A DNA stretch of 64,000 bases from Adineta vaga (taxonomy: Eukaryota; Animalia; Rotifera). Within the stretch, counting starts at the first letter, position 1. Each line of letters opens with the position of its first letter. The position numbers and the translations under genes were made by a program. This document shows positions 16,379 through 64,000 of the stretch, one piece after another. The notes under the pieces were generated by a model. It ran no database searches. It worked only from the letters and a program-made list of their open reading frames with translations, and was not told the DNA's origin. The DNA is taken from contig CP075497.1 in assembly GCA_021613535.1 (NCBI GenBank), positions 13,578,001-13,642,000 of the forward strand. The letters run 5' to 3'.

Positions 16379-19300
16379 ATGGCATCTTTCAATAATTCAT
16401 TAGAACCAGTGGCTATTGTAGGCATAGCCTGTGAATTTGCAGGTGATATTCACTGTGGCAACGATTTGTGGCACGCACTGAAGCACAATCAAGATGTGGG
16501 TAGTGCAATCCCATGTGATCGATTCGATCTCGAGTCCTATTGTGCTCATATGTTTAACAAAGACAATGATGGACAATTTCGGCAGAAACTTATTCGTCGA
16601 GGATATTTTCTGTCAAATAACCAATGGGATATGTTTGACCCAAGTTTCTTCGGTTTGTCCGATGCTGAGTCAGGTAGTATTGATCCATGTCATCGACTAC
16701 TGATGCTCAAGTTTATTCATTTACTTGACGATGCTGGCTATACTATGGAGAAAATGAATGGGTCAAGAACATCTGTGCACATCGGACAATTTTCCACAGA
16801 TCATGCTATAACATCATTTCGCATGAAGTCTGAGCATCGATCGAGATTTCATGGACCCAACAGTTTGCTTTACAATGCTGCTGCTCGACTATCGTATCAT
16901 TTTAATTTACAAGGTCCTAATGTATCATTGGATGTTGCCTGCTCATCGTCGCTGGAGGCTGTACATTTAGCTGTGCAAAGTCTTCGCACAAACGAAGCAG
17001 ACATGGCTATATGTGGTGGAGTGAATGCTGTCTATTCACCAGAGAATCTTTTATATGGTTCGATTATGGGCGCTGTATCACCTGATGGACGAAGTCGATC
17101 GTTTAGTGCTGATGGAAATGGTTATGCAAAAAGTAAACAACACATTTATTTATATTTGTTAATACCTGTGAATCTCTTATGTTTAGGTGATGGTCTTGGT
17201 CTTTTACTATTGAAACGACTGAGTGATGCCGAACGTGATAATGATCGAATATATTGTGTTCTTCGTGATGTACTTAGTAACCATGATGGAAGTGAGGATA
17301 AGAATAGTTTTGTTGTTCCATCAGCTGCCGGTCAGGCACGTTTACTCAATGATATTTACAAGCGAGCAAACTTTGATCCTCGACGTATTTTTTACGTTGA
17401 AGCACATGGCACTGGTACGCCGGTAGGCGACCCGATTGAAGCCAATTGTTTAGGTCAATTTTTCAATCGATCTTCTTTTGATCCTCCATTGTTAATTGGT
17501 TCTGTTAAAAGTAATTTAGGGCACACAGAAGGAGCAGCTGGTATTGCTGGATTGATTAAGATTGCTATGTGTATGCAGCATCGGAGTATTCCACCAAATA
17601 TGCATTTCACATCATTAAATCCAAAAATTGAAGCACAACGATATAATCTTCATGTTGTCCAACATTTCGTACCATTTCCTTTTGGCAGTGACATTAGTCC
17701 CATAACTATGGGCATTAATTCATTTGGTATTGGCGGCAATAATGTACATGCTATTGTTGAAGAATATCGAACAAGTACAACTTCAGCTATGAATAGATTT
17801 GAAAATGATCATGTTCATGGAAGTAATAAGGAGAGCAAACAATATTTCATTTTTATTTTCTCAAGTGAGTTTCATAAATATAAATTGTATGATTAAATAA
17901 TGCACTTCCTTTTCTTCCTTTCAGCAAAAAGTCGTAAATCTCTAAACAATCAAGTAGCTCAATTCAATCAATGGTTACAAAAGACATTAAAAACTAATAT
18001 GAACAGTAATTATGCATTTCTTCAACGTATCTCTCGACAACTTCTTCTAAAACGTACTATTACTCATGGACACTTAGCCATTTTTGTGTTTGCCAATAGT
18101 GAACAACTTCAGGAACAAATCAACGCTTTTCTTGTTGAAGAGACATTACCTGGCCTATCTATATTCGTACGTCCGGTAATATCACTAGCAAAGATATGTT
18201 TTGTTTTTAGCGGACAAGGTCCTCAATGGTGGGCTATGGGTCGACAACTGTATGAAAGTGAACCTGTTTTTACTCGATGGATTCAACTGATTGATGCTGA
18301 AATGACGAACATCAACAATGGTGAATGGTGCCTACTAGAAGAATTAATTGATAAAAAAAGTGAAGACGAATCTCGTATTAATGATACGAATATTGCCCAA
18401 CCAGCTTTATTCGCTATTCAAGTGGGACTGGCTGCTTTACTTGTCTCATGGAATATCTATCCTTCAACTATCGTATCACATAGTGCTGGTGACCAGGCAG
18501 CTGCTTTTGTTGTCGGTCGTCTAACTTTGCAAGAAGCTGTTCGTATTGTTTATCATCGATCACGTCTTCAAAACCGTAATACACGACAAGGCGGTCGTAT
18601 GTTAGCCATATCGATGAGTGAAGACGAAGTACAAAATAAACTTCTCAAAGGGATCGAACATCTTGTTTGTGTTGCTGTTGTTAATAGTCCTCGTTCAGTG
18701 ACATTAAGTGGAGATGAAAAGGTTATCGATGAATTACAACAAACGCTTTCAACATTTTATCCTGATGTTTTCAAAGCTCGTCTTCGTATTGAAAATGCAT
18801 TTCATTCGTATCAAATGGATCGATTCAATATAGAAAAAGAGATGTTATCATCACTAAAAAATATCCAAGGATTTCCTGTGAAAGACTCCCAACAAATGTT
18901 CAATCCAAAATGTGCTGAAGCTCATCTTTATTCGAGTGTAACTGGTAATAAATTAAGTGATCAGATACCGGTCGATGCTCATTATTGGTGGTCAAATGTG
19001 AGACAATGTGTTCGATTTTGTGATGCTATTACATCCATTCAAAAAAATGATGCTGTAACGGTTTTTCTCGAACTTTCACCGCATCCTGTCTTAGCTACAT
19101 CTATTCGAGAATGTTATGAACCGACAAATTTCCAACCACTTATTCTTCCAACATTAAAACGAAAAGAAAACGAGCAAATAACAATACTTGGTAGTCTAGC
19201 ACAATTGACGACATCATCTGATGTTTGGCAACAATATTTTCATACTCGAGATACATTACCGATGATAGACAATGAACAACTATTTGATGATTTTCCATTG

Positions 19301-22300
19301 TATGCATTTGATCTTAGTTCATGTTGGTATGAATCAAAAGATTCAGTTATTACACGTCTTGCTAATCGTATTCCTACTCATCCTCTACTTGGTGTTCGTC
19401 AATTAACAGGGCAAACAAGTGCTACATGGAAAAGTCTCATCAATATTAATCTAGCACAATATGCTTATTTGAAAGATCATAAAATTCAAGATATAATTCT
19501 CTTCCCGGCTGTTGCTTATCTTGAACTTGCAACAGCTGCCTGTCATCAATTATTTTCATCATCAGATAACAAGCAATCTTCAGTTGTTTTGACACAAATC
19601 AAATTTGTCAAAGCTCTCGTTCTTAGTGAACATGAGTTAATAGAAGTGTTCACACAAATTATTATACCAGTTCGTGAATGGTTTGTCTATAGTCGATCAT
19701 GGACATCAGCTGGTTCGGATTGTATGCGTTCATCAGGCATGGGAAGTGCGGATGTTGTCGATTCTTTTATCGATCCAGAAACTCTCAATCAATATTCACT
19801 ACGTGAATTCACTCTACATGCTCATGGTCAAATTGAGATGGATGGCGTTCAAAAAAAATCAACAACACTACTTTCTACTAGCTCAACTTACAATACCTGG
19901 TCAACAAGTGATACAACCAGTATTTATACTTATTTGTCAACACGAGGTTATCAATATGGACCTTCTTTTCGAAACATACAGTCATTATGTGGTACGACAT
20001 CTACAGTTGTTGCTCAAATTCGTGGTAATCTCGATGCAATTACTGATCTCTCTTGCTATTATTTGCTTCATCCAACTTTATTGGATACTTCTTTGCATCC
20101 ACCTCTAGTTTTATTACCTGAACTACATACTACATTTCTTCCGGTTAGTATCGACAAATTTGTTGCTATGAACCAAGCGAATAGATCCACTGTAAATTTT
20201 GAAATGCGTGGAAAATATCATGATATCGTCTGTGGCTTAAGTCAAGAGCGAACATATACTTGTGACTCATTGGTTCTCTCAAGTGATGCCACGATAATTA
20301 AGGAGCCGATGTTCATTTTTGAAGGTCTTATGATTCAACAAGTTCAAGGTGTACAATCTGGTAGGTGGATATTAGAGAAGTCCATTTTTGACAAATTAAA
20401 TACAGCAGCTGATTTGCCCAATGTATATCGTTGTGAACAATTAGACACAATAATAAAAGACTATTGTATGAAAAGAATATGGATGGATTCACCAATAATA
20501 ACAAATGTAGCTGACTTATTTCCATCACTTGATCAGATTCGTAACAGCACAATCGATTTTGTTAGTAATCAAGATTTAATTGATTCAATTGAACCATTCA
20601 ATAAATTAGCTGCATGTTATGCTCAATTATCAATAAAAGATCTCGATCTAAATCTTGTTGATAATCGGTATCGTTCTTTATTAAATGCATGTACTTCTCT
20701 TGCCACTATTGTACATGAACAAATAACATTACACTCTACACAAATTTATCGTAGACATTTACTCAATCGTTTTCCTCGTCTCATGCCATTTTTGATCTCA
20801 TTGGACATATATGGTTCGCGTCTCAAAGATATTTTTACTGGACAACAGAATGGATTAGATGTATTCTTAGGAAACGAAGAGACTGAACGAGCATTGCAAA
20901 AAATAAAAACTATCATTAGTGCAACTAAAACAGAACAGATATTTCATGCAATATGTCAATATTTTCAGATTCGAAATGATCACAGTAGCGATCAGCCATT
21001 CGTCAATCGACGATTACGTATATTTTGGTTTGCCAGTGGCGAACACTTAGATGTTTTGCCTGTTCTTCATCTTCTACTTAATTTATCACGTCAAATAAGT
21101 TTATGGATTGACTTACACTATGCGGATATGGATCCAGTACAACTCGCACAAGCTAAAGAATTATTTGAAACGCACTTGACTGATCAAACTCATGTAAATA
21201 TAGTATACGATCAAACAATTGATTTGTTTAACAATGAAATTCTTGAAAAAATTCCATTCGAATCTTTTGATATTGTGTTTGCTGCAAATAAATTACAGGA
21301 AAGTGAAGATTTGATGAGATCTTTAATTAAACTTCGTCATCCACTCGTTCCCAATGGTCTTCTTTTATTACTTGAACTAACTGATGTTCCTCTGTATTTC
21401 GATCTTATTTTTGGCCTACTAGATCAGTGGTGGCTAGAATCTGGTAATCTGCGTTCTCTCCATGATATTCATCATTGGACTACAGCTTTAAGAGAAATTG
21501 GTGGATTTGAATGTGTCGAGACAGTGATGAGTCAATGTGAAAGTACGCTAATTATTGCTCAAAAGACAATATCTTACAAGATACTACAAACACTTGATGA
21601 AAGAAAAAATCAAGCATGGTTATACTTTGGCAAAAATGATCCACAGAGTCTTGGTAATACCATTGTACCGTTTTTGCCATGTTCAGACGTTCCATTTTTT
21701 GATATTTGTATCTCAACGATTGATGTAATTCGTTCCAAACTTCAAATACTAATGAATAAATACAAACAATTGTATATTATTTTTGCCTGGCCATTTGAGC
21801 AAACTTCCTTAGGTGACAATAGCGATATGGCATTTAAACAACACGAAAACTCTATTTGTAGCATCTTCATCCAACTTCTTCAAATAATTCACGCAACATC
21901 TCCTAGTTTTCTTCCGTTTATATTTGTTATCACACGACATGCGCAGCTAAATACTGGCTCTGACTGCAATATCATCGATGCACCACTTATCGGCCTTGTG
22001 CGAAGCTTAATAGTTGAATATGAACAGCATCATCTGAAACTCATCGATTTACAAGCACCACCAACTATGATTAATCAATCGGCATTTGTTCAAGCTTTGG
22101 CACAATTTATGGTAACTTCTCGATATACAAAGAATACTGATGAGATTGTTCTTTATCTTGATAAAAATGAAAATAAAGTCAAACATATCACATGGCACTA
22201 TGAAATGTTACGAACACAGGAGAGAAAAGAAAAACAATCAGAACTAAAACAGATTTGTATTATTCCTCAACAAGATGTCAATCAACAACCATTCCGTCTT

Positions 22301-25039
22301 TGTGTGCCTCGATCTCGTTTTCTCACTGAATTAACATGGACTCTCGACAACAGAGCAAAAGAGTTATTACCAGGGAAGGTAGAAGTTCAAATTCACTGTG
22401 TTGGTATTAACTTTCGTGATGTATTGAAAGCACGAGGTTTATATCCATATACTCGTACATTTGCACAACTCGACGAGCATCAGCCATATATGAATCGAGA
22501 CACCGAACTAGGCTCAGATTTTGTTGGCACCATCATTCGTGCGTGTCCTGATGTCAGTTTTCAGCCAGGTGATCATGTTGTAGGCATCTCTGCATGTGGT
22601 GTATTTCGTTCGCATGTCATTGTCGACTCAACGCAAGTAGTATGTATTCCAACTGAGTGTCCGCTCACCGATGAACAATTATCAGTTATGCCTGTCATAT
22701 GTCTGACAGTTATCTATTCTCTCAAATATCGGGTTCATTTGCGACGTGGCCAAACTGTTCTCATTCATGCTGCAACGGGTGGTGCTGGTCAAATTTGTAT
22801 ACAGTATTGTCAATGGATTGGTGCTCGTGTTTTGGCTACAGCTGGAACTGAAGAAAAGCGACGATTTTTACGTGAACATTATGGTATCGAATATGTATTT
22901 AATAGTCGAGACACTTCTTTTGTTGGTGATGTGAGAAATATTCTACCTCATGGTGTTGATGTTGTCATTAATTCGTTATCAGGTATACTTTTACAAGAAT
23001 CCATTAAACTACTTGCTAATCATGGTCATTTTGTTGAATGGGGGAAACGAGATATTTTTGACAAGAGTCAATTATCGATGTTTGACTTTCGATCGGATTG
23101 TAGTTTTCATGTTATCGATTTAGTTTTAATTCTTGGAAAATACCCAGATATCTGCATTGCTATGCTACAAGAAATGGTTAATTTACTTATCCAAGGCAAA
23201 TTAAAAGTAATCGAACCCACAGTTGTGTATGAACCATCTCAAGTGATTGATGCATTTATAAGATGTAATAGCGGTCAATTTATGGGGAAAGCTGTTGTTC
23301 GTGTAACCAAGTCTAATGAATCGCTCTATTTGAATAGCATACATCAGTATAATTTACCTAAAGGTAACTGTTACTAATCTTGCCTTTTGTTTCTAATAAA
23401 TATAATTTTAGATAGTGACATAATGTTTCCTTCGAATGTCTGCCAGCAAGGAACGGTTCTGATTTCTGGTGGATTTGGAGGTCTTGGATTGACAATGTCT
23501 CGGTGGATGATAGAGAAACGAGATGTAAAACGTATTATACTCATGACTCGTCGGACATTAGCTGAACTTGAGCAATCTTCGAATCCACAATATGATGATT
23601 GGTTACGATTAAAACAAACAATAAGTGCATATCAAGCGCATGTTGATGTTGTTCAAGCAGATGTAACAAATTTTGATCAAGTATATGATCTAATAGAAAA
23701 ATTAAGTCGAACTTCTTATCCTGTTCGAGGAGTTATTCATAGTGCTGTAGTTACAGAAGACCGAACATTAGCTAAAATGACACCAGAATATTTGACAAAT
23801 GTTTTAGCAGCAAAAGTTTGTGGTGCTTGGATTCTTCATCAAGTAACACAGCTTACCCATGCTCCTCTTCACTTTTTCCTAATGTTTTCATCAATTCGAA
23901 ATCATCTCCTTGAAGTGGCATCGTCCGGTTACAATGCTGGCAATCAATTTCTCGATGCTCTAGCTCACTATCGCATGAATCAACAAAATTTACCTGCTCT
24001 CTCAGTTAGTTTGCCTGCTGTAAGTGGTGCGGGTATGTTTCATCGACAGCGGGATATGCTCAACACTTTACAAAGTACACATGGCTTTGAAGTATTGCCA
24101 CCAATAGCTGTATTCGAGTTGATCGAACGGTTTCATACAAATCAGAAGGTTTGCCCATGTCCTGTTATTTTTGCTGTTAATTGGCAAACATTGTATGAAA
24201 GACGTCACAAATTGCCAATATTTCAATTGAATAAAATAATAGAAGAACGCTATACTGCTATGAAACTCGTAAATATATCAAAAACATCAACGGAAAACAA
24301 TAGTACGACTACTTTGAACTTGAATGGAAGAGAAACTATTATTGAACGAACTCAGATGACTGTAGCACACCTTCTTGGTACAGCAGATATTGATCGTGTC
24401 TTAGTTGATCGGTCACTGGTTAGTCAAGGTATAGACTCATTAGCAGCTCTTTCATTATACAATTGGTTGGGAAAAGAGACAGGTGTTTACATTCCATTAG
24501 TTGATCTACTTCAAGGATATTCTATTGAAACTATTGCAACAGTGATTCATAATAAGCTCAACGAACGACATCAAGTTGTATCATCGAATATTAAAGAGGA
24601 ACATATGGATACTGATCTAATCGAAGAAAATGAAATAAAACTATCTCATAACTCTAATTACACTGGTGTAGAGAATATCATCTGTCTTCAATGTCCACTG
24701 CAGTACAATAGTCATGTTTTCTTCTGTATTACGGAGCAGTCACCAACTAATACTGATAACCTGAATAAATTCTTAATTGACAAAATATATGAGCATCAAA
24801 ATCAGACAAGATCAGTTGTCGTTTATGCTATCCAAATATCATCTGTAACATCAACATCATCGATATCTACTTACGCTCGTGATATGATTTTGCAAATGCG
24901 TCGTATTCAGCCACATGGACCTTATCAATTAGTGGCTGTTCGCAACAAACAGGAAGAAATCATTGCACATGAAATGATACGACAACTTAAGGATCATCTA
25001 ATGATTATCAATAGTCGATTACTTCTTTTGAACGATTAG
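16379..25039 (+). CDS. Reducing type I polyketide synthase KS-AT-DH-pseudoMT-ER-KR-ACP-pseudoTE, 4 exons, about 2832 aa
   Basis: Introns 17133-17186, 17865-17924 and 23364-23411 give one continuous frame. KS DVACSSS, EAHGTGT, KSNLGH; AT SHSAG, NAFHS; DH HPLLG, DHKIQDIILFP, LLDTSLH; ER LIHAATGGAG; KR ISGGFGGLG, SSGYNAGN; ACP GIDSL; terminal RRIQPHGPYQL TE-like remnant. Confidence 0.93.
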
Positions 25040-27563
25040 AATCAAGAATAACAATAATATTGACACTCTTCGGACATTGATGGTCGGGTTAGTTTGACCT
25101 CTTATTTTTATGTACTAATTCTAACATTTATCAGATATCACACTATAGCAATACTCGACGAGTTCTTAATCATCAAAATAAGGATATTCAGAAGTAAAAT
25201 TTATACCTCTCACTATTTCAGTGAAATGTTTCAAAATTTAGCATTCTTATATATTGTAGCAAGAAATATATAGTTTTACACAAACTATTTTTTCTCAAAA
25301 TCCACTGCTGTTTTCTGAATAAAAGATTTTACTTATTTTACAATGAATGGCAAAAGAAAATTATTAATCTTCGAAAAACTTTACATACATTAGTTGAAAA
25401 CAGTTTAATAACAGCTATACTCTTTGACATACAAAACAGATCAAAAGTAGCATAACACAGAATGTGTTTCAATGTTTTCTTTATACATAATCAGTTAGAT
25501 CTCATACTTATATCACACGTCATAGATAGTATAATTCAAAAATATAGTATATGATCAATATCTAGCTGCGGTAATTTGTTCAAAAGCGCACAACCTTATG
25601 AAGATCGAAATGAGATTATCATGCCTGAGTGAATCTATTGTAACATTTGATACAACAATAAACACATTGAGCAACTTTTATAAAACACGGTATTGTTAAA
25701 AATACTAAATAAATACACATTAATGTGTGTTTGATTTTTTTAGTTTTTATGTCTATCATATGCATAGTATTCAAAATCAAACGCTATTAGAGAGTTGAAT
25801 CTATCCACAAATAAATTTTTCTCATATGTCTAACTTAGTAGCGCTGGTTAATGTCAATTATCAGTTGTTGAAACTTGTGTATACTTGTATCATTGAATAT
25901 GGTAAAGCATAAAATCCTCTAACACATACAATAATTCTAGTAACTATTTAATATTTTATCATATCTAATGATAAAAATGCACATAAGATCTCGACGGTTG
26001 TTTTACATAGTAATATTAACTAGCGCTACTGCAGAAGAAGAGTTATTGATTCTAGTGAAAACATCTTCAGTTTATACTTAAAATAAGTTAGGCAATGTAA
26101 TTTCTCAGATTCAGTTCCATTATAGCTTTCATCTGAAATCTACCTTATTTAAATAAAACAAGCAAGAATTCAGTTCTTGTCTTAATAGTCAACAATTAAT
26201 CTTATTGATTCGTCGTTTAAACGTCGAAAATAAAATTAGATAACGAGTTCTTGCTTATCGAATGAACTCTTTATAAGGGACATATTGGGCTTTTTCTATT
26301 ATACATTTTGTTTTCAAATTATTCAGTGTTCTGCTCAATTGAGTATAATAAAGAGAAACATGTTTTGTATTCATTGTAAACTATTTTCCTGAGAGATAAA
26401 AAAAATAATAAAACGCTGCTAAGAATGACACATATTTAATACTGTACAATGTTTCTGTGTACCATTATTGTTCATAAGTACATGATTAATATACCAAAAT
26501 TGTTGTTGTTGTTAAACATTTTTGTCACTCTAACATAATTAAATATGCAATAGTTTACTATAGAATGTTCTATATGAGGTTCTCAAAATGACTATATTTA
26601 TGGAGAATAATGACCGAAACATATTTATCGTATTGAAAATGTATTTTAACTATCAAATTAATTAACATATGAACCAATCAGGATAGAACAAAAATGTATA
26701 ATGAATAACACGCATGATGAGAGTGAAGGTGAACATATTATATCATTTTATTCTTTGAAGATTTTACAAATATCCTATGAGATAATTGTCAATGACTCTA
26801 GACCGTATTCTGATTCAATAGGTTAAACCTTGTAGAATTCAAATGAATATCTTCTGTATCAATTGCATTATACTGAATACTTTAGGATGTAATTTTCATA
26901 ATATATATAATCTGTTATCGAATTCTAAGGGCTAACCGTCATTATTGTGTGTTCAAAAAATATTTTTTGATGATATATGTTACTTATAGAAGCTATTAGA
27001 ATTATTCTCACTCCATTAGCTCATCTTGATTAAGTAAGAATAAAACATTGAACTCTACATATATTGTAATATTTTTCTGTATCTTAATCCTCCAGTTGTC
27101 ATTTAATTTACTGATGAAAACGCAGCATTTTGATGATTGAGAAAGACGTCAACTCTTCGATTATTTTATAGATATTCTAATAGGATATTTATTCTAAAAA
27201 AAGTTTTTATGTGAATATTTACTAATATTTAATCAACTTATATACTAATACTACCAAACTAACAAGACTATTTTTGCTACTTATCCAATACAATATTATA
27301 TCATCTCAGTTTCTTTTCTTGTGTAATAGTGAAATATTATTATTATACGATGATAGTCCACTTCGAATTCTTATATGAACGATAGAAACTGCAGTTTCAG
27401 CTTTCCAGTTAAAGCAATAAATAATAAATTTAATCATATTGAACTTTTTTTGTGATGTGTTCCAATTTGTATTTTCTATTCTCTTATCTTTTTATAATTT
27501 CTAGATTGTAATCGGCTTTTTGCATTAGAGATCTTTGTTTTTGTAGTTGTTTATCACAAAAAA

Positions 27564-30500: not shown

Positions 30501-31451
30501 GATATCGATGTTGATCTTTTGTCAAATATACTGATTAGATCTGATAGCGTCGCTTATATTATTTTCACGAGTGGATCAACAGGAATGCCTAAAGCAGTAA
30601 GTGACTCAAATGAATATTATGAATGAGTGATAAAATTATTCTCATTGCTTTTTCAGATTCAAGTTCGGCATAGTAATTTCACCGCATCCATCTACTCATT
30701 GGTTGATATTGATACATTCAACAAACATGATACAGTTATTCAAATGTCACGTTGTTCATTTGATATTCATGTGCAAGAAATGTTAGGCACATTGATGAAT
30801 GGTGCCACATTAGTTATGCTTCATCCAAGAGGTACTCTTGATTTTGAATACCTTGCTGAAGTCCTCAATAATAAACAGATTACATATATGCATACGGTAC
30901 CAACTCTTCTTCTCAGTTTTATTGAATTTGTTGGACAGTGGAAAAATCGGAACCCTATCAAATATCTTCAGTTGCTTATGTTCAATCTTCCTGCGTCAAT
31001 GAAGACGAATTACGTGAATATTGTCAATTTCATTTACCACCTCATATGATTCCATCTCTTTTCGTCATTCTTGATAAATTACCTTTAAACACGAATGGAA
31101 AAATAGATCGAAAAGCTCTTCCATTACCCGATTTCACTCTTCTATCAACAATTACACATAATAACGATCAACCAAAAACAAATATCGAACAATGTATACA
31201 TTCCATTTGGTGTCACGTTCTTCCACATCTTACATCGATTTCAGTTTCACAAAATTTCTTTTCTTTGGGTGGTAATTCATTATCTTTGATGAAACTTCAT
31301 CATTTATATCAAATAGAATTTAAACATAATCTCAATATGAGTGAACTTTTTCGTTATCCTACTATTCGTGATCATGCTCGATTATTTCTCGAACAAAAAC
31401 ATTCATCTTTAACAGATAACATACAATGGCAATCGCTTCATCTCAATGAAG
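27564..31451 (+). other. NRPS module 1: starter C, extra C-terminal half of a second C domain, internally deleted A, T
   Basis: Full C (HHIAFDL), then FWLHALHDY..LPLPFDRYR..RTGRG..KFDF with no preceding HHxxxD lobe. A domain jumps from NPIKYL to VAYVQSS in another frame at ~30970. Confidence 0.8.
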
Positions 31452-52400: not shown

Positions 52401-55400
52401 AATGTTACATTGTCGTTTATATAGATTTTCTGTAAATTATGGAAAGTGTAGTCTGATATTTGCGTCAGCGTTACGTTTAATACACATTGTCAAATAGTCA
52501 TCAAAGATTATAAAAGCTTTATCTAGCCATTTATTATTCTTTTTTCAAACTATTACTTGATTAAACATAAGTTGTAAAAAGATTGTTATGAATTAGAAAA
52601 TAAACGACTTAAAACCAGTTCGCTTTGACTACTTCAATTTCAGAAAATAGCACAAATAAAGACATTTGAGATTTGCCAAAGTTGTTATCTTTTCCGCAAG
52701 CTTTCGATACTCATAAACTGTTTTTATTTCTATTAAACAATGACACATGCTCAATAGTCATCTTCACATATATACGAGTATAAGAGTCAAATCTAAAGAA
52801 TAATGCCTATTATTGACTGATATTTCGTTAAAACGTAATTTGCTCACAATGATAGACATATTGAAACCAATATTGTATCAGTTGAGTTGTCATCAGTTAG
52901 ACTTTAAAAAATGCTTTCGTCCAGCTTCTTCCCTGTCAAATCACACTATACAACCTGCCGACTTTTTCCAGGTTTTTACCGTTTCAATCATATATGTAAA
53001 CCAGTCGATCCAGACTGATTTAAAAAGCCAAACCGATTTAGCAGGTCGTTCAACAGAAATTCTACCACTTCCAAGTCTGAAAGACTCTAATAATGATATA
53101 CGTTCATATAAATATGATCTGATTATGAACCATGTTATATTAGCTAAATTCTTTCAACAATATATTTGACCAAATAACAATCAATCGCCTATGTTAGAAG
53201 AGCAAGCAATAAGATTCGGTTTTTAAAACATCATACATAACTATTTTGCACCCAACACGATGACTGTTATAGGTGTTGAGTAGGGATGTCACATTACTTT
53301 TACTTTTTATTTATTTTGCTCATTAATTGATAATAAATTTATTACCATTATTACTTATTGCTTCTCACTAGTAAATACTTTAGTTTTGTTATTTTATTGA
53401 TATTAGAGTTTCCACTCATTCTTTGTAGTGCATTTTTCACTAATTTTGTATCGAGTTATTAGTAATTACTTTCAAATCATTATTACTTATTGCCAATAAT
53501 AAAGTAATAATAAATTTGAAAGTAATAAGTAATAACGAGTAATAATTATTATTATTATAATACAGTAATAACAATTGTAAAATAGCATCGATAAGAAGAA
53601 TAGGTAATACATTGACTTCTGAATGTTATCTGTGAACCAAATATTATCTTCTAGAACCTCTCACAGATGCTAAGCGCATAAAAAAACAGTGCATTGGAAA
53701 ATTATATACAATTTTATCTGCTCATTTGTTTGGATATAGATGGGTCAGTGACGAATCTAAACTTTTCATGATGAGATTCGTTTTTGCGGGGAATAGAGAC
53801 GATTCAGATCAAACGATGCGTTTTGAAATTCATTACAGATAGCCTCGACTCATTTCCCAGCCTTTTTTGCAAGAAGAAGAATAAGAATCTTCAGACTAGT
53901 CGCGACCACCCGCAGCATCATCCCCTAAAATCGCTATTGGACCAAATGTGGATATAGATTGGATAGATGTAAATATAAGAGATGAGTATGCTTTACTCAA
54001 CAATATATACTCCATCACATGCACACTTCCATCCACAACCATACCTATCTTCGTATTCACTCACCCAATCGAAACCACCTATATTCACACCCATTCACAT
54101 AAATATTGGAATGAATCGTTATGGGAAAAATAAAATCAAGCCTTTTCATGGTTACTTGTTGCGGATATGAAAATATAATCTATGACATAACGCTGTTTCC
54201 GTATATTACTTTATTAGTTTTTTTAAAGCTTCTACTTATTACTAGTAGTTATTACTGACAATTATTACTTTTATTACTTATTGATTTATTACCTTAGTAC
54301 TATTTCAGCTTTATTACATTTCCTAATTATTATTTATTACCAGTAATAAGTAATAACACTTTTAATTATTACTAAGTAATAGTAGTGGTGATAGAACACC
54401 CCTAGTGCTAAGATTTACCTAACCTATGCGATTGTTTTTTTTATCGTATCCAAACATGTTGATGTCATGCTGTCTTATAAGTTTCTATCAACCTTCACAA
54501 TTTATACGACTTTTGTTTAACAAAAGTAGCAAAAAGAAACGTTTATATCACTTCCGTTCGTCATACATATAAATCATCAGTCATTGTAGCTTACTGAAGA
54601 AAAGTTATCTACTCTCCTTGCTTCGTAAACAAGCAGCTATAAAATATAAATTTTTTCTTCATTACTCATCAGTATATATTTATTCGATTCCCTTTCTAAT
54701 GCAAAGTATTTCAAATGCCGGTTCATCCACTACAGTCTTAACCCTCTGGTTCTATAACAGTTACTAGGAGATCTAATGTTTCTCAGACATAGAACTAACA
54801 AAATAAAAACAAAAAGTACTAAGATCGCAAAGTTAGGAACAAAAAATATAAAACATGAAATTCCGTATGTTATCTGAAGAAAGACGGACTGGTGTGACGC
54901 AAATTATTTCTTACCATTATATAATGGCTATTTATTTTCCTTCTTTAATTCGCTACTATTAGAACGAGAAAAGTGATAAACATGCGCTTTTTATAAGTTG
55001 CTCTTCTATATGCGACCGACTATATCCTATCGATCATCCTCTATCGAAGAGCATTTTAATTCGAGAAGATCCTTTCTAGAACAATTAGAACACAAAATCC
55101 GATCGGTGCGTTGCAACTGGAAACTTTTGAGAACCTAACCCAAGGGGGAAAAGCTGATTGCAATGGTTGCCGTTGATTGCTATCCGTTTTCTTTCTATCC
55201 GATGACAAGTTCAAGTATTTTCTAAAAATACATAAAGTTTTCATCACTAAACATCATGACAATAATCTTTTCACAGTATTAAACGGATAATAGATTTTTT
55301 GGTACCTGTGATTGTCAAAGATTGTCAATGATTGCGGATGGTTGTCGATGATTGCTCTCCTTATTTTGACTACCAAACAACGGACTCAGGTTACATCTGA

Positions 55401-58400
55401 TATGACTTGTTGTTTACATCATTCAGCAATATGACAATCATATTTTATCAATGGATTTATGGCTGATTGTCAATTATTGCTTTACATGCAATCAACTTTT
55501 TCCTCCTTGACCTAACCTATCATTATAGCTTCACTAACTCACACTTCAAATCATACTTCAAAATTGTTCTTAACTTATATGTTTTTAAGAGTAATAGGGC
55601 ATATTGCGACGAAAATCTCCTTCTCATTTTGATATTGTCACACAATTTGATGAAATCATAATATTCCAGTATCATGCATTTCTCTTCATCTTCAATACTG
55701 ACTTTACAAAACGATAGAGATCACAATATGGAAGAATTCTCATATTTTTTAGTTGAGACTATTCCACATCATGAATTTCCAATGACATCATCCTCGTAAC
55801 TTTGAACTTATGTCCTTCTCTATATCCATTAGCCATCATTAAAATCTCTTCAAAAAATTTCATATAAACAAAACATACACTCAACAGCTCACCTCTTTCA
55901 ATTCTTTGTCGAAGACACATTACTCTACTCTTATGTTCTCTTATCTTTTCAGGCGAAACACTATTACCACAAACAGCACTACACATATGGAATCATTTGA
56001 AATCAAGCGCTCAAATTTATAACTTATATGGACCAGCAGAATGCACTCTTATCTCCACATTTCATCTCATTACACAAGACGATCTTCATTTACATTCGAT
56101 ACCTATTGGTGGTCCACTTGTTGGATACATGTCATGTTCTCGATACATACCTTCAACCAATTCTTATTCAGTATCATATCGGTGAACTATGGATTGGTGG
56201 CGATGCTGTATTCAGTGGTTATTTACGTCGACCTGATCTTTCAAAACAATCATTAATACATGTTTCTCATACAGAAAGTCTCCTGTATCGTACAGGTGAC
56301 TTAGTACGAATTGAACGTCAGTCAGGTCTACTACTTTACGTCGGACGTCAAGATTTTCAAGTTAAATTGAGAGGACAACGTCTTGAATTGACTAACATCG
56401 AAAGTGTAATTATGCAAATATCAACTCTGGATGCTACGAACTGTGTCGTCATCAAATTTGATCATGCTGATCAAGAACATCTTATTGCATATATTGAAAC
56501 TAGAAGTCAATTGAGTTTCAACATATTACATGATGAATGTGCAAAACACTTGCCACTCTACATGATTCCTTCCTTGTTTATCCCATTGAATAACTTTCCA
56601 TTGAATCAAAACGGAAAATTGAATCGAAAAGCTCTTCCATTACCCGATTTCACTCTTCTATCAACAATTACACATAATAACGATCAACCAAAAACAAATA
56701 TCGAACAATGTATACATTCCATTTGGTGTCACGTTCTTCCACATCTTACATCGATTTCAGTTTCACAAAATTTCTTTTCTTTGGGTGGTAATTCATTATC
56801 TTTGATGAAACTTCATCATTTATATCAAATAGAATTTAAACATAATCTCAATATGAGTGAACTTTTTCGTTATCCTACTATTCGTGATCATGCTCGATTA
56901 TTTCTCGAACAAAAACATTCATCTTTAACAGATAACATACAATGGCAATCGCTTCATCTCAATGAAGGTAATTCAAAAATATGAAAAAGAAAAACTAATC
57001 TTCTTTCTGTTGATATTCTCATAGGTCCTGCATCATTTGCTCAAACACGTATCTATCTAGACGAACAAATTCATTTTGCATCTTCATCAACAGCTATCTA
57101 TCATATTCCTATTATTCTCGAAATCACTCAAACATCAATGTCATTATCAAGACTTCAACGAGCTCTTTTGGTTCTTATGAATAAACATAAAATACTTCGT
57201 ACTCGTGTTGTATTTGATGAGAATGAACATCATCTTAGACAAGAAATTCTTCCATTTTCATCCATTTCAATGATTGATACAACAATTTCTCATGAAGAAC
57301 ATCTTCATCAACTTTGTTATAATGAAGAAACTAATGCAACACTTTTTAATTTAATTCATGGAGATGTATTTCGATGTCATCTTATTCGAAAATCAATTAG
57401 TACAGATAACGATCTTCTCATTCCTGGTAACATTCTTATTTTTAACTTTCATCATGCAGCTTTTGATGGCTCATCCATTGAAATTTTCTTCCATGATTTA
57501 CAACGAGCATACACAATAGATGATCAATTAGAACCTTGTTCACTCGATTATATAGATTATGCAGTCTATGAAAAAGAGATTAATATGAATGAAGCAACAC
57601 AATTTTGGAAAGAACATATGAATGATTTCATTAATAATATTCTTCCATTACCATATGATCGAATACCACATGATAATAATACTCGTTCTGGTCATGGCAT
57701 AACAATGAGTTTTGGTTTGTCCCAAGATATTGTCGATCAAATGCTCACTTACATGATTGAAAATGATGTTACTCTCTTTCAACTTGGTTTCGCTATTTTC
57801 TATACTTATCTATTTAAACTTACTCAACAAACAGATTTATGTGTTCTTACCGTTAATGCTAATCGTCATCGACCAGAATTACAAGATATTATTGGTTTTT
57901 TTGTCAATACATTGCCTTATCGTCTATCAATTGATGGTTACTTAAGCTTTCTTCATCTTGTTCGACGTGTGAAAGAACTTGCTCTTACTACATTGCCACA
58001 TACACATCTCCATTATCAAGACATTATTTCAAATATGACAATGAATACTTTGCAAACAATGTTTCTTATTGAAACTGAACATGACAATGTGGTTACTCTT
58101 GATTCTCATACTAATCTTCGTCCATTAACTTTTCTCACTACTGATCCACAAACTATTGCTAAATTCGATTTCACTTGCTCTCTTTATTTACAATCTCAAA
58201 TGCGTTCCATAACTGTAACATTCAATGTTTCGAACGATCTCTTCGATATGAATACAACAGTTCTCATGATTAATCGTTTTAAATGTCTTTTCAATCAACT
58301 TTTCTCATCATCATCACCATCATTCTTATTTCTTTCGCAATATTCATTACTTCTATCATATGAAATCGAGTTGTTTCATCAATTAAATAATGAAAATTCA

Positions 58401-61400
58401 CTATGTTTATCAAATTCATGGCCTATTCATCATCGATTTGTATATCAAGTTGACAAACATCCACAAAAAATTGCACTCATACTCGATGATCAATATTTGA
58501 CTTATGCTGAATTATTGAGTAGATCACAATTGTTAGCTTTGTATTTAATTGAATATTATCATGTACAATCTGGTGATGTTATTGGTGTTTGTATCGATAG
58601 AAGTATTGAAATGGTAAGTCATTGATGACAATATTGATTTTGATTTTTCTTTTTTCTATAGATTATTAGTATAATATCGATTCTAATGTGTGATGCTTGC
58701 TACTGTCCATTATCACCTGATCAATCTGCATCTAGACTTAATACACTAATTGAACAATTAGAACCAAGATGTGTTCTTATTCGTATGCAAACAGATACAT
58801 TTATTTCATCGAAGAATATCAATATTGAACAAGTACTATTGTTATCAAATTTGTGTGAATGGAAAGAAGATGATATTCGTGGAGATATGAAATCATTAGC
58901 TTATATGATATTTACAAGTGGCTCAACGAGTATTAAAATTGTACCGATTAGTCATAAAAATTTTGATATCTGTATGAATGCACTTGTTCATTCTGGAATA
59001 ATGATGAATAGTGATATTGTACTACAAACAACTCCATCTTCATTTGATATTCATATGCAAGAAATTTTGGGTACACTATGGCTTGGTGGATGTCTATGTT
59101 TACTTCACTCAAAAGGAAATCTTGACATGAACTATTGGATATCGGTGGTACAACGACAAGAGATTAGTTTTATTATAAGTGTGCCCACTTTCTTCACTTC
59201 ACTTATTCAATATATAGAGAAATCAGCTGATTTACATCAAGCATTATCAAGTGTTCATCGATTATGTTCAATAGGTAAGTTCTTTCTTTTCATATAAAGA
59301 TTTATTTGTGCTATGGTATGTTCGGAATAAAAAGATTCAGTAGATAAGCTCTTCATACCATATTTGTCATGTCATGTCTTAGTTATGAAGGGAATTAGAA
59401 TGGAGTTTGTCGTAGGAACTGTTCGTTAATGTTTCAGTTTTTGGGGACAATAGTGAGGATTTCGAGCATAGGCGATTGTGATCACAATAGAGTTGATTAG
59501 TTTTTCGAATTAATTAAAATCAGAATCGATCTGAATCTAGAAGTTTCGGTCCGAGTGGTGTTATGGAAGATGAAAAATAGCGATGACTTCTACGGCTTTT
59601 TAAAACGTTACAGTTATTTTTGGAACTGATTAATTTGCTTTATTACACAACACATTGATTGATTATGTTGTTTCGCATTTTGACTATCTCTGTTAGATGG
59701 ACATACGAACAATATATAGAGTGTACGAGTACACGAATTGCGAGACTTTTTATTTAAAATTATGCTGCCGTTGAATAGCCTCCTACTTATGGTTAAAAAT
59801 AGTTTCAGTTGCAACGGTTCTGATTTCCGTTCAGTTATATCACACTTCATGAATTTAATTGTGTTTCTGAGCTATAATAATGCATGAATTGGGTCTCTAA
59901 TTTAGTCATCAGACCGACTCCTTCAGAATTGTAGGCCTCTAAATCGAAACATTATGTACTAAGGTATAGTGTAACAATTTCATATTTTAAGCTTGTAGAA
60001 TTGAGCCTTTATTCAATAGTTCTTCGTCTTATGTGTAAAAAAAAACATTAGAAAGGGAGAGAAAACGAGAAACAATAACTTTGCGTAGGCATAATATACA
60101 CATGCCAAGATATGACATATAACTTTGCAGTGATACAATTCTGTATAAGAAAGAAAACAGAAGTGATGATAAGGAAAGGATAATACTTGGTGTATAATCA
60201 ATCCATATGAATAATCTCAAGAATAACAAACGGTACAATCTGGCCATTAACTGAGAAGCGACAATGATATAGATGGGATGTTATAGATAAATTGAATTGG
60301 AAGTGTTACATAGCGATAAATCCTAACAAATTCAAATTCATAAGTTCTGATTCATAAATACATAATGCAAAATTTAGGAACTAATAAATGTTTGGATCTA
60401 TTTCACTGCGGAAAGTATGTAGAATCAAGAGTAATTCGAAATGCAATAGACGAAACGAAGAATATTTCGCATTATAGTAATTCCATGATTAATAGTTTCT
60501 TTTATAAATTCTTTAAACTTGCGATCTTAGCAGGCTTTTGGAGAATAATTCACCTTTAAGCATTGCAGAGAATCTAATGGTAAAATAATTTAGATACAAT
60601 ACTACGTAAGGTAGAAAACTACAGTCAAGTATTACTTCTTTCTATTCAACATTCGAGAGAACCTTAGAAAGAGTTCATTATATGAAGATGTCCAAGTATA
60701 AGTAAGTTCTTATTTTGGTTATATATTTTGAATATACGACTTTTGACAACTGGATGAGTCAGATGAGTTGGGTTTAGATCAAATTATCTAGCATAGTTTT
60801 TATAGGTCGGTCCCTTTGCTAGATCTTTCTAACAGATCTCAGGCTAGGAATTAGTCCAGCCCGGTCGCGATCTTAAACCGGCCGGTTTTTACCGTTTTTT
60901 AAAATTGTTTATAAGACAATTATATCATTGTTCTGTAGATGTCACACATTATGATTTACAAAAATGTGATATTAATACCATAAATTTAAGTTAGAAAGAA
61001 GAAAACGACATTGTACGCAGTGGACATATTATTATTAATATTATTATTATTATTAAATCGCTATGATTTAAAAACGTTAGGCTTCAATTTTACTGATTGT
61101 CCATTTCAGCGAATTAAAAGCAATCCGTATGTACTAGGTACTTAGTATTGCAAGAAAATGGATCAGTATCTTAGGTAAATGTTACATTGTCGTTTATATA
61201 GATTTTCTGTAAATTATGGAAAGTGTAGTCTGATATTTGCGTCAGCGTTACGTTTAATACACATTGTCAAATAGTCATCAAAGATTATAAAAGCTTTATC
61301 TAGCCATTTATTATTCTTTTTTCAAACTATTACTTGATTAAACATAAGTTGTAAAAAGATTGTTATGAATTAGAAAATAAACGACTTAAAACCAGTTCGC

Positions 61401-64000
61401 TTTGACTACTTCAATTTCAGAAAATAGCACAAATAAAGACATTTGAGATTTGCCAAAGTTGTTATCTTTTCCGCAAGCTTTCGATACTCATAAACTGTTT
61501 TTATTTCTATTAAACAATGACACATGCTCAATAGTCATCTTCACATATATACGAGTATAAGAGTCAAATCTAAAGAATAATGCCTATTATTGACTGATAT
61601 TTCGTTAAAACGTAATTTGCTCACAATGATAGACATATTGAAACCAATATTGTATCAGTTGAGTTGTCATCAGTTAGACTTTAAAAAATGCTTTCGTCCA
61701 GCTTCTTCCCTGTCAAATCACACTATACAACCTGCCGACTTTTTCCAGGTTTTTACCGTTTCAATCATATATGTAAACCAGTCGATCCAGACTGATTTAA
61801 AAAGCCAAACCGATTTAGCAGGTCGTTCAACAGAAATTCTACCACTTCCAAGTCTGAAAGACTCTAATAATGATATACGTTCATATAAATATGATCTGAT
61901 TATGAACCATGTTATATTAGCTAAATTCTTTCAACAATATATTTGACCAAATAACAATCAATCGCCTATGTTAGAAGAGCAAGCAATAAGATTCGGTTTT
62001 TAAAACATCATACATAACTATTTTGCACCCAACACGATGACTGTTATAGGTGTTGAGTAGGGATGTCACATTACTTTTACTTTTTATTTATTTTGCTCAT
62101 TAATTGATAATAAATTTATTACCATTATTACTTATTGCTTCTCACTAGTAAATACTTTAGTTTTGTTATTTTATTGATATTAGAGTTTCCACTCATTCTT
62201 TGTAGTGCATTTTTCACTAATTTTGTATCGAGTTATTAGTAATTACTTTCAAATCATTATTACTTATTGCCAATAATAAAGTAATAATAAATTTGAAAGT
62301 AATAAGTAATAACGAGTAATAATTATTATTATTATAATACAGTAATAACAATTGTAAAATAGCATCGATAAGAAGAATAGGTAATACATTGACTTCTGAA
62401 TGTTATCTGTGAACCAAATATTATCTTCTAGAACCTCTCACAGATGCTAAGCGCATAAAAAAACAGTGCATTGGAAAATTATATACAATTTTATCTGCTC
62501 ATTTGTTTGGATATAGATGGGTCAGTGACGAATCTAAACTTTTCATGATGAGATTCGTTTTTGCGGGGAATAGAGACGATTCAGATCAAACGATGCGTTT
62601 TGAAATTCATTACAGATAGCCTCGACTCATTTCCCAGCCTTTTTTGCAAGAAGAAGAATAAGAATCTTCAGACTAGTCGCGACCACCCGCAGCATCATCC
62701 CCTAAAATCGCTATTGGACCAAATGTGGATATAGATTGGATAGATGTAAATATAAGAGATGAGTATGCTTTACTCAACAATATATACTCCATCACATGCA
62801 CACTTCCATCCACAACCATACCTATCTTCGTATTCACTCACCCAATCGAAACCACCTATATTCACACCCATTCACATAAATATTGGAATGAATCGTTATG
62901 GGAAAAATAAAATCAAGCCTTTTCATGGTTACTTGTTGCGGATATGAAAATATAATCTATGACATAACGCTGTTTCCGTATATTACTTTATTAGTTTTTT
63001 TAAAGCTTCTACTTATTACTAGTAGTTATTACTGACAATTATTACTTTTATTACTTATTGATTTATTACCTTAGTACTATTTCAGCTTTATTACATTTCC
63101 TAATTATTATTTATTACCAGTAATAAGTAATAACACTTTTAATTATTACTAAGTAATAGTAGTGGTGATAGAACACCCCTAGTGCTAAGATTTTACCTAA
63201 CCTATGCGATTGTTTTTTTTTATCGTATCCAAACATGTTGATGTCATGCTGTCTTATAAGTTTCTATCAACCTTCACAATTTATACGACTTTTGTTTAAC
63301 AAAAGTAGCAAAAAAGAAACGTTTATATCACTTCCGTTCGTCATACATATAAATCATCAGTCATTGTAGCTTACTGAAGAAAAGTTATCTACTCTCCTTG
63401 CTTCGTAAACAAGCAGCTATAAAATATAAATTTTTTCTTCATTACTCATCAGTATATATTTATTCGATTCCCTTTCTAATGCAAAGTATTTCAAATGCCG
63501 GTTCATCCACTACAGTCTTAACCCTCTGGTTCTATAACAGTTACTAGGAGATCTAATGTTTCTCAGACATAGAACTAACAAAATAAAAACAAAAAGTACT
63601 AAGATCGCAAAGTTAGGAACAAAAAATATAAAACATGAAATTCCGTATGTTATCTGAAGAAAGACGGACTGGTGTGACGCAAATTATTTCTTACCATTAT
63701 ATAATGGCTATTTATTTTCCTTCTTTAATTCGCTACTATTAGAACGAGAAAAGTGATAAACATGCGCTTTTTATAAGTTGCTCTTCTATATGCGACCGAC
63801 TATATCCTATCGATCATCCTCTATCGAAGAGCATTTTAATTCGAGAAGATCCTTTCTAGAACAATTAGAACACAAAATCCGATCGGTGCGTTGCAACTGG
63901 AAACTTTTGAGAACCTAACCCAAGGGGGAAAAGCTGATTGCAATGGTTGCCGTTGATTGCTATCCGTTTTCTTTCTATCCGATGACAAGTTCAAGTATTT
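27564..64000 (+). CDS. Multi-exon, multi-module nonribosomal peptide synthetase (starter C plus at least 6 C-A-T modules), 3' end outside window; frame broken at ~30970 and ~56128 as assembled
   Basis: C motifs HHIAFDL, HHIAFDA, HHAAFDG, ASFAQTRIYL; A motifs FTSGSTGxPK, SFD, NxYGPAE, Y(R/K)TGD, GRxDxQVKxRGQRxE, NGKIDRKAL; T motif FFSLGGNSL. Introns 30237-30293, 30597-30656, 31452-31508, 33732-33787, 34808-34864, 36454-36501, 37118-42572, 43590-43646, 45292-45354, 45629-46416, 46760-46815, 47229-47580, 48188-48244, 49834-49881, 50498-55952, 56968-57024, 58614-58661, 59275 to beyond 64000. Confidence 0.9.
31107..31590 (+). repeat. 484-bp A10-T-linker-intron-C1 cassette, five copies
   Basis: Same sequence by eye at 31107-31590, 34463-34946, 43245-43728, 47843-48326 and 56623-57106, including the 57-nt intron. 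Confidence 0.92.
31509..34807 (+). other. NRPS module 2 (type X) C-A-T
   Basis: C HHIAFDA; A with TSGSTGMPK, NLYSPAE, YKTNDL; T GGNSL; one 56-nt intron. Confidence 0.88.
32030..32062 (+). repeat. Coding poly-Ser microsatellite (TCA)4(TCT)7; (TCA)4(TCT)8 in the copy at ~44168-44203
   Basis: Direct reading; offset between the copies changes from 12138 to 12141 across the tract. Confidence 0.85.
38683..39699. mobile_element. Degenerate hAT-like non-autonomous element in the large intron (also 52063-53079, 60840-61856)
   Basis: Imperfect TIR caggctaggaa / ttccaagtctg; subterminal ggtttttaccg motifs near both ends; flanks acagatct / aaagactc(t) match only partly. Confidence 0.5.
39901..41024. 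mobile_element. hAT-like non-autonomous element in the large intron (also 53281-54404, 62058-63181)
   Basis: TIR tagggatgt / acaccccta; 8-bp flanks gtgttgag / gtgctaag (6 of 8); dense subterminal ttattact/agtaataa arrays at both ends. Confidence 0.7.
43647..48187 (+). other. NRPS module 4 (type Z) with chimeric C, A split by four introns, T
   Basis: Exons 43647-45291, 45355-45628, 46417-46759, 46816-47228, 47581-48187 splice in frame and restore SGCVYVP, PKAVQIRH, SAGES, DYQVKLHGQRIELEEIE. Confidence 0.87.
45684..46347. mobile_element. hAT-type MITE inside NRPS intron 45629-46416
   Basis: TIR cagagcccgaaac / gttttgggctcta; perfect 8-bp TSD gttttcat at 45676-45683 and 46348-46355. Confidence 0.88.
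48245..57024 (+). repeat. NRPS module 5 (type Y copy 2), 8780 bp, 2-bp deletion frameshift at ~56128
   Basis: Matches 34865-43646 except differences seen at 52091 (C vs A) and ggatacat vs ggatacacat. Confidence 0.93.
57025..64000 (+). repeat. NRPS module 6 (type Y copy 3), truncated by window end
   Basis: Tandem to copy 2; net 3-nt loss in the A3 P-loop at ~58932 (TSGSTSIK vs TSGSTSTPK); a few +1 homopolymer differences near 63190-63315. Confidence 0.93.

Follow-up and report, generated by a model that had tools for sequence, protein, structure and literature searches.

The closest described systems are found in the inventory of Adineta vaga clusters (assembly Av20) published by Nowell et al. 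(2024, Nat Commun 15:5787; PMC11258130, Suppl. Data 9). There, g48151 is presented as a pathogen-induced 'PKS-NRPS hybrid cluster' (Av20 cluster 5.2), in which a polyketide synthase (PKS) block running from KS to KR-ACP is followed, after a gap of ~370 nt, by the first condensation (C) domain of a nonribosomal peptide synthetase (NRPS). According to the same paper, most clusters of this sort lie in the subtelomeric zone, and PKS and NRPS are generally assumed to be cotranslated. The stretch of DNA analysed here, called the window throughout, comprises 64,000 nt of Av20 chromosome 6 (Chrom_6, CP075497.1, 13,893,210 bp; G000:C6:13,578,001-13,642,000) and carries a PKS gene followed on the same strand by an NRPS gene. 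It resembles g48151 in having the KS to KR-ACP block ahead of a first C domain, and both loci are subtelomeric, horizontally acquired and intron-bearing. The difference lies in the reading: PKS and NRPS, treated as cotranslated by Nowell et al., are read here as two genes.

The pair is already published as cluster 6.6, because the open reading frame (ORF) coordinates derived here coincide base for base with the 'region6.6' rows of Suppl. Data 9 (for example, window 16379-17896 = 13,594,379-13,595,896), and it is very probable that the locus is that published PKS-plus-NRPS cassette, made up of two genes. The rows carry the labels PKS_KS, PKS_AT and PKS_KR, then Condensation_LCL; they give an additional domain 'NRPS_term', an estimate of 16,531 aa, 12 PCP rows and the comment '2 frameshifts', apart from which the region is called 'intact'. 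Cluster 6.6 is not one of the focal clusters, and neither the half-thioesterase nor the tandem arrangement of C domains nor a conserved gene boundary is described in the available text. What is added here is the dead truncated thioesterase (TE) at the end of the PKS, the recurrent linkage of the two genes, a starter C domain that is one by position only, and the two-gene structure. An earlier note on this DNA, made from the letters alone, had taken the cluster for an unknown one, which does not stand, and had ended it at position 64000, which is only the edge of the window; the NRPS extends for ~46 kb beyond it, to ~C6:13,687,849. The description given in that note of an intact, intron-bearing reducing PKS with no catalytic release domain, followed 2.5 kb later by a same-strand NRPS with a C domain first, is borne out by the gene structures reported below.

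Taken as a whole, it is reasonably probable that Adineta possesses a two-gene cassette in which the acyl chain made by the PKS is handed to the NRPS, yielding an N-acylated peptide. The first gene encodes a single-module, fully reducing type I PKS of bacterial descent, with the domains KS-AT-DH-(dead MT)-ER-KR-ACP-truncated TE, that should build a saturated, unbranched acyl chain from malonyl units; because this PKS has no release domain of its own, the chain would stay on its ACP. The second gene, on the same strand and 0.2-3 kb downstream, encodes a multi-module NRPS with a bdelloid-specific first C domain at its N-terminus, which would accept the acyl chain in trans, from the ACP of the PKS, and couple it to the first amino acid. 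Later NRPS modules would extend the chain, and a putative Pls/PosA-type terminal domain would release the N-acylated peptide. Directly observed are the structures and catalytic motifs of the genes, the dead half-thioesterase, the linkage seen again and again and the separation of the reading frames; the hand-off, the product and the release step are inferred.

Bacterial lipopeptide synthetases with a starter C domain (surfactin SrfAA, CDA) likewise have an N-terminal C domain without a prior A-T and receive the acyl group from a separate protein. In contrast to them, the first C domain here is not of the starter (Cs) subtype by its sequence and is followed by a truncated second one, and the acyl group presumably comes from a dedicated reducing PKS, where those systems draw on a fatty acyl-CoA or a small ACP. 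The fungal highly reducing PKS-NRPS hybrids (LovB-type, PsoA) share the domain order KS-AT-DH-MT-ER-KR-ACP followed by C, and LovB and PsoA are among the solved matches, but they consist of one reading frame instead of two. Furthermore, the NRPS here has many modules (12 PCP rows in the published table), a putative Pls/PosA-type tail takes the place of the reductase or Dieckmann cyclase, and bacteria supply the nearest relatives outside the rotifers. Finally, among solved structures the first C domain matches the NRPS AB3403 of Acinetobacter baumannii (PDB 4zxh, C-A-T-TE) best (E = 1e-17), along with ordinary PCP-C didomains, and AB3403 too has its C domain at the N-terminus. The similarity is distant, AB3403 has one module only, and elongation C domains of the ordinary kind score nearly as high.

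The PKS gene and its truncated thioesterase

The assembly searched is haploid and comprises 100.8 Mb in six contigs; spliced-model searches were run exon by exon or with the NCBI PKS model P0001 (Table 1). Three open stretches in one frame (16379-17896, 17900-23377 and 23387-25039) carry Pfam matches to KS, AT, DH, ER, KR and ACP. The stops between them fall inside GT-AG introns of 60 and 48 nt, and P0001 removes an extra in-frame intron of 54 nt within the KS domain, which gives the exons 16379-17132, 17187-17864, 17925-23363 and 23412-25039. An alternative genetic code was considered for the in-frame stops and rejected: they all fall within GT-AG introns measuring 48-63 nt, and each of the three stop codons occurs among them.

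Inspection of the individual domains reveals that the catalytic motifs are present in the PKS (Table 1). The KS possesses its Cys-His-His triad. The AT keeps the active-site Ser and His, the first Gly of GHSxG being replaced by Ser (SHSAG), and its specificity motif is malonyl-like in the alignment. The SHSAG site (P0001 residues ~640-660, window ~18.6 kb) stands in place of the usual GHSxG in the whole truncated-TE PKS clade, the TE-bearing sister clade having GHSVG. The reducing loop is complete (DH His, ER GGAG, KR GGFGGLG and YNAGN), and the KR Tyr and the carrier Ser of the ACP are present. The methyltransferase remnant reads FWFASGEH where LEIGAGTG would be expected. Collectively, these features point to a single-module, fully reducing type I PKS, the single module of which suggests that it may be used iteratively.

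The nearest non-rotifer relatives of this PKS are bacterial type I PKSs with 27-35% identity, which could speak for non-animal contamination of the contig, and its domain order is like that of animal fatty acid synthase (FAS), which could speak for the animal's own FAS. Both explanations are refuted. Animal FAS matches the PKS with E = 1e-80, as opposed to 1e-120 to 1e-147 for bacterial and fungal PKSs. The locus lies within a chromosome of 13.9 Mb, 250-315 kb from its end and thus subtelomeric; its GC content is 31%, its introns are short and of the GT-AG type (48-63 nt), rotifer transposons adjoin it, and orthologues are present in several bdelloids (A. steineri, A. ricciae and Rotaria). The contamination that the earlier note had named as a danger to its proposal can therefore be set aside.

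The C-terminal end of the protein deserves closer consideration. The 165 residues downstream of the ACP match no Pfam family, and neither a Pfam release domain nor a GxSxG motif was found anywhere in the protein. The tail has counterparts in more distant bdelloid PKSs with PF00975 and GYSFG, where it aligns with the TE over the initial ~125 residues (BLASTP E = 3e-12 to 9e-9), and it gives weak matches to solved TE domains. It ends before the part expected to hold the catalytic Asp and His. A short tail without GxSxG is found in every full-length, checkable member among P0001-P0049. Four A. vaga paralogues share both the tail and its stop codon, the latter placed to within 3 residues. By its sequence, the PKS is thus without a working release domain. 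A FastTree phylogeny calculated for 23 PKSs places the TE-bearing and the truncated-TE clades as sisters; at the two loci examined for TE-bearing bdelloid relatives (2/2), no NRPS neighbour was found.

Gene boundary and first C domain

No continuous frame leads from the ACP to the C domain, as the conserved stop is followed by a spacer of 2,524 nt and a separate ATG at 27564, with the C domain beginning at residue 26. In four A. vaga paralogues, the PKS ends at one and the same position, and the NRPS has an ATG of its own directly ahead of the conserved N-terminus of the C domain; this ATG, 25 codons ahead of the C domain, is conserved in the 4 paralogues and in 2 other species. The spacers of the four paralogues measure 209, 263, 860 and 2,461 nt between open frames and cannot be aligned with one another, and across the linked loci the spacer ranges from 0.2 to 3 kb without conservation. 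In the spacer of the window, only the first ~100 nt after the PKS stop resemble a paralogue, the one on chromosome 3, as expected of a 3' untranslated region (3'UTR).

Upstream of the NRPS ATG, at ~27488-27503, there is a pyrimidine tract with an acceptor-like site, TAG/ATT. A pyrimidine tract with (T/C)AG/AT is found 50-75 nt upstream of the NRPS ATG in eight loci, and the same acceptor-like site precedes the PKS ATG, at this distance too, in eight readable loci (c66, which is the locus in the window, c5x and six in other species). Here, the PKS site lies at ~16300-16320; sites equivalent to the two are found in the regions L012 and L014-L019. The motif resembles a splice acceptor, which may serve a spliced leader or an intron in the 5'UTR.

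These findings bear directly on whether the PKS and NRPS form one hybrid gene that encodes a single PKS-NRPS polypeptide, as the Av13 gene model of the paralogue g48151, which covers both parts, would suggest. Against such a hybrid stand the stop after the half-thioesterase, conserved within 3 residues in four paralogues, the unconserved spacers of 209-3,000 nt, the conserved NRPS ATG, the alignment with the A. steineri and A. ricciae proteins beginning at residue 1, and the acceptor-like site ahead of each ATG. In addition, NCBI models the PKS alone, with 2832 aa, and the models of its A. steineri, A. ricciae and Rotaria orthologues likewise comprise ~2.8 kaa. A single hybrid gene is highly improbable. 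Taking into account the conserved stop and ATG, the unconserved spacers, the acceptor-like sites and the stand-alone NCBI model, the sequence favours two genes with two mRNAs over a fused hybrid, in agreement with the two-gene arrangement of the earlier note.

A more far-reaching proposal, which must be considered rather improbable, is that the half-thioesterase is kept as an adaptor that docks the loaded ACP onto the first C domain of the separate protein, and that one transcript is split by spliced-leader trans-splicing. If this were true, a split hybrid synthase would have evolved inside an animal, and the putative acceptor ahead of the NRPS start in eight loci would belong to an operon-style way of keeping a transferred bacterial pathway co-expressed. 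A literature search for rotifer operons yielded no usable item.

Within the separate NRPS gene, exon 1 encodes a complete C domain, a second C domain represented by its C-terminal lobe only (Pfam positions 190-433) and the beginning of an A domain, as far as position 60. This layout is colinear with that of the paralogue c67 (cluster 6.7, minus strand, same chromosome) and of two A. steineri orthologues. Here, as in cluster 6.7 and A. steineri, only the C-terminal lobe of the second C domain remains, conserved all the same with ~50% identity; in the chromosome 5 paralogue (g48151; L011:3754-5860) the domain is full-length. In an exhaustive profile search, all matches starting within ~40 residues of the N-terminus (17/17, 30-62% identity) have the first C domain there, and those that were looked up are all bdelloid, from Adineta or Didymodactylos. 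Hence, the first C domain appears to belong to a bdelloid-specific C-domain group.

The earlier note had interpreted this domain as a starter C domain. Its N-terminal position, with no upstream exons missing, supports that interpretation; the subtype does not. antiSMASH labels the domain Condensation_LCL in Suppl. Data 9, and the surfactin SrfAA starter C domain (8f7h) is among its weakest solved matches, so that by sequence it is not a canonical Cs domain. CDA-C1 was unmatched among the solved structures, and an internal C domain of the same NRPS gives a similar list of solved matches. In the motif HHIAFDL, as compared with HHxxxDG, both His residues and the Asp are kept and the Gly is replaced.

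Linkage of the two genes in bdelloid genomes

The tandem arrangement of PKS then NRPS is found at six A. vaga loci (Table 1) and, furthermore, at two loci each of A. ricciae and A. steineri. The conserved linkage in homologous regions and related species, which the earlier note had proposed as a check, is thus present. In a variant of the arrangement, the NRPS lies upstream of the PKS at one A. steineri locus. At C4:14,900,001-14,920,000 (C4:14.90 Mb; L025, L026), a PKS of the same family is convergent with an NRPS starting with a first-C-type domain, the 3' ends being ~5 kb apart. A Didymodactylos NRPS contig begins 1.4 kb upstream of the gene and is uninformative about a PKS neighbour. In the phylogeny of 23 PKSs, the linked loci fill one subclade. 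Together, the dead half-thioesterase and the recurrent linkage strengthen the reading in which the PKS hands its acyl chain to the NRPS, and a hand-off to the first C domain is, for the family, moderately likely.

Table 1. Coordinates of the PKS and NRPS genes, their domains and modules, the linked A. vaga loci and the adjoining transposon (window positions unless a chromosome is given)
Feature	Position	Strand	Details
PKS gene	16379-25039	+	NCBI model P0001 = A. vaga I4U23_031538, 2832 aa
KS domain	16403-17608	+	Pfam PF00109, PF02801; DVACSS, HGTGT, NLGH; contains intron 1
AT domain	18200-19216	+	Pfam PF00698; active site SHSAG; specificity motif NAFHS, malonyl-like (alignment)
DH domain	19379-20182	+	Pfam PF21089, PF14765; His kept; H..D....P (alignment)
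Degenerate methyltransferase remnant	21110-21364	+	Pfam Methyltransf_12, E = 0.0035; S-adenosylmethionine motif I lost
ER domain	22370-23299	+	Pfam ADH_N, ADH_zinc_N; HAATGGAG
KR domain	23450-24025	+	Pfam PF08659, E = 8e-47; GGFGGLG, YNAGN
ACP	24359-24577	+	Pfam PP-binding, ACP_SdgA_C; GIDSL
Truncated thioesterase remnant	24659-25036	+	N-terminal ~125 residues of TE only; VAVRNKQ at nucleophile motif
PKS-NRPS spacer	25040-27563	+	single-copy, non-coding; stops in all frames
NRPS exon 1	27564-30236	+	first C 27639-29057 (HHIAFDL), truncated second C ~29154-29909, start of A1; Pfam
Rest of module 1	30294-31451	+	A1 fragments 30294-30596 and 30657 to ~30965; then AMP-binding_C remnant, T1
Module 2 (C-A-T), apparently intact	31509-34807	+	56-nt intron 33732-33787
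Repeat-unit module U1 (C-A-T)	34865-43589	+	5,455-nt intron inside A domain
Module Y (C-A-T)	43647-48187	+	candidate 788-nt intron 45629-46416
Repeat-unit module U2	48245-56967	+	99.8% identical to U1; contains the long intron
Repeat-unit module U3	57025-64000	+	ends at window edge
Last NRPS exon, T domain + putative Pls/PosA-type terminal domain	C6:13,685,243-13,687,846	+	TIGR02353
Linked locus c66	C6, this window	+	cluster 6.6
Linked locus c67	C6:13.75 Mb	-	cluster 6.7
Linked locus c3x	C3:19.94 Mb	-	PKS-then-NRPS
Linked locus c5x	C5:0.67 Mb	+	= g48151, cluster 5.2, by coordinates
Linked locus	C3:0.33 Mb	-	PKS-then-NRPS
Linked locus	C3:1.57 Mb	+	PKS-then-NRPS
PIF1 helicase of Helitron/Helentron	487-3225	-	Pfam PIF1; whole element 487-4949
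Helitron/Helentron Rep	3240-4949	-	Pfam Helitron_like_N, DUF6570; transposon context, outside cluster

NRPS modules, lesions and the state of the pair

After module 1, the window contains, in this order, module 2, a repeat unit U (C-A-T, 8.78 kb), module Y and then two further U copies. The U copies are 99.5-99.8% identical. Identity reaches 99.5% or more among four module copies, evidence of recent unequal recombination. The 5,455-nt intron has good GTAAGT and TTTTCAG ends, and the intron at the same position in modules 2 and Y measures 56 nt; the other NRPS introns are 48-63 nt long. Its copies lie at 37118-42572, at 50498-55952, from 59271 to the window end and at C6:13,646,091-13,651,419. 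The insert in this long intron is present in four genomic copies that are ~100% identical and all lie within the NRPS gene; the possibility that this 5.3-kb insert is a transposon was rejected on account of these four copies only, all in the NRPS gene, and because it holds no ORF with a Pfam match. The last exon, outside the window, matches TIGR02353 with E = 4e-32 and 111 bits, which is below the 423-bit cut-off.

The transposon-rich setting that the earlier note had pointed out consists of the Helitron/Helentron listed in Table 1 and of repeats at ~10.4-11.2 kb that resemble miniature inverted-repeat transposable elements (MITEs) and have dozens of genomic copies. The repeat at ~10390-10775 is ~360 nt long, palindromic (it matches both strands) and MITE-like, with dozens of copies across all six chromosomes, and a second repeat at ~10815-11230 adjoins it.

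The same note had warned of lesions in this NRPS copy, and they are readily located. Compared with the paralogue c67, module 1 has lost ~184 residues (A-domain Pfam positions 275-384 or 296-384, and AMP-binding_C 1-41) as well as one intron, and its frame changes at ~30966-30970. Position 31046 was considered as the deletion breakpoint and rejected: it is a gene-conversion boundary, the sequence on its left side is still homologous, and the true junction is at ~30966-30970. The gene-conversion tract itself (31046-31590 vs 34402-34946, the T-domain regions of modules 1 and 2) is 99.6% identical, the sequence directly to its left being only ~60% alike. A repeat collapse during assembly is unlikely as the cause of the deletion, because the left deletion edge lies in unique sequence. 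Module U2 carries a 2-nt deletion, and thus a frameshift, at ~56127 relative to the U1 copy at 42747, and for the break at 47312-47581 in module Y no convincing splice solution was found. As assembled, the initiation module cannot, judging from its sequence, activate its amino acid. Since the A1 domain is broken and at least one more frameshift is present, this NRPS copy probably makes no peptide, at least from this haplotype, next to a PKS that is intact; that the copy still works is unlikely.

Several observations, at this locus and elsewhere, weigh against the reading in which the PKS hands its acyl chain to the NRPS. The A1 domain is broken here and is separated from the first C domain by a truncated second one; that first C domain has the position of a starter but not the Cs subtype, and reads HHIAFDL instead of HHxxxDG. 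As regards the linkage, no NRPS lies within 10 kb of the closest PKS orthologue (A. steineri P0002, 82% identity), whose TE is truncated in the same way, and one Rotaria locus and A. vaga C3:16.5 Mb have a truncated TE with no NRPS within 10-14 kb. The truncated TE is therefore not always paired with an NRPS. The number of linked loci also overstates the number of independent observations, because paralogous loci share the linkage by descent. Lastly, 0-2% of the words sampled from 22000-31000 occur in RNA-like runs (8% in one run, which bears another organism label); all of these runs are stored as contigs and consequently cannot show silence. DNA runs containing the region were found in the same run search.

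The A. steineri P0002 locus (L015, CAJNOI010000022.1) places the PKS among tetraspanin, glycosyltransferase, ribosomal S24e and prefoldin genes. In the FastTree phylogeny, this unlinked A. steineri gene is nested in the linked subclade, as the sister of the PKS described here, so that the absence of its partner looks secondary.

A different account of the locus would be that the pair is no longer a working unit here, the NRPS being a decaying, recombining pseudogene and the PKS acting alone or with an unlinked partner and another release. It would accommodate the loss of ~184 residues and the frame change in the A domain of module 1, the frameshift at ~56127, the recent unequal recombination seen in the four module copies, the sister A. 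steineri PKS amid housekeeping genes with no NRPS, and the near absence of the region from the RNA runs. It is less easily reconciled with PMC11258130, where the region is 'intact' but for 2 frameshifts and expression is seen for some clusters with apparent defects. In the other modules, moreover, the exons are open and the splice sites good; with a haploid assembly, the other haplotype may be whole, and the contigs cannot demonstrate gene silence. This account is a substantial possibility that falls somewhat short of an even chance. As to the acyl transfer from PKS to NRPS proposed in the earlier note, it is reasonable for the gene family, given the half-thioesterase and the linkage, but doubtful at this copy, in which the A1 domain is broken.

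The locus itself adds little, because it is already published and probably damaged. Bdelloid rotifers are the clearest case of animals that have apparently acquired bacterial-type antibiotic assembly lines, and a fungal pathogen induces a paralogue of the pair described here. The details of the family, namely its two genes, the conserved dead half-thioesterase, the dedicated first C domain and the loss of the NRPS partner in some lineages, give targets for expressing an intact paralogue and for identifying what would be the first animal-made lipopeptide of this kind.

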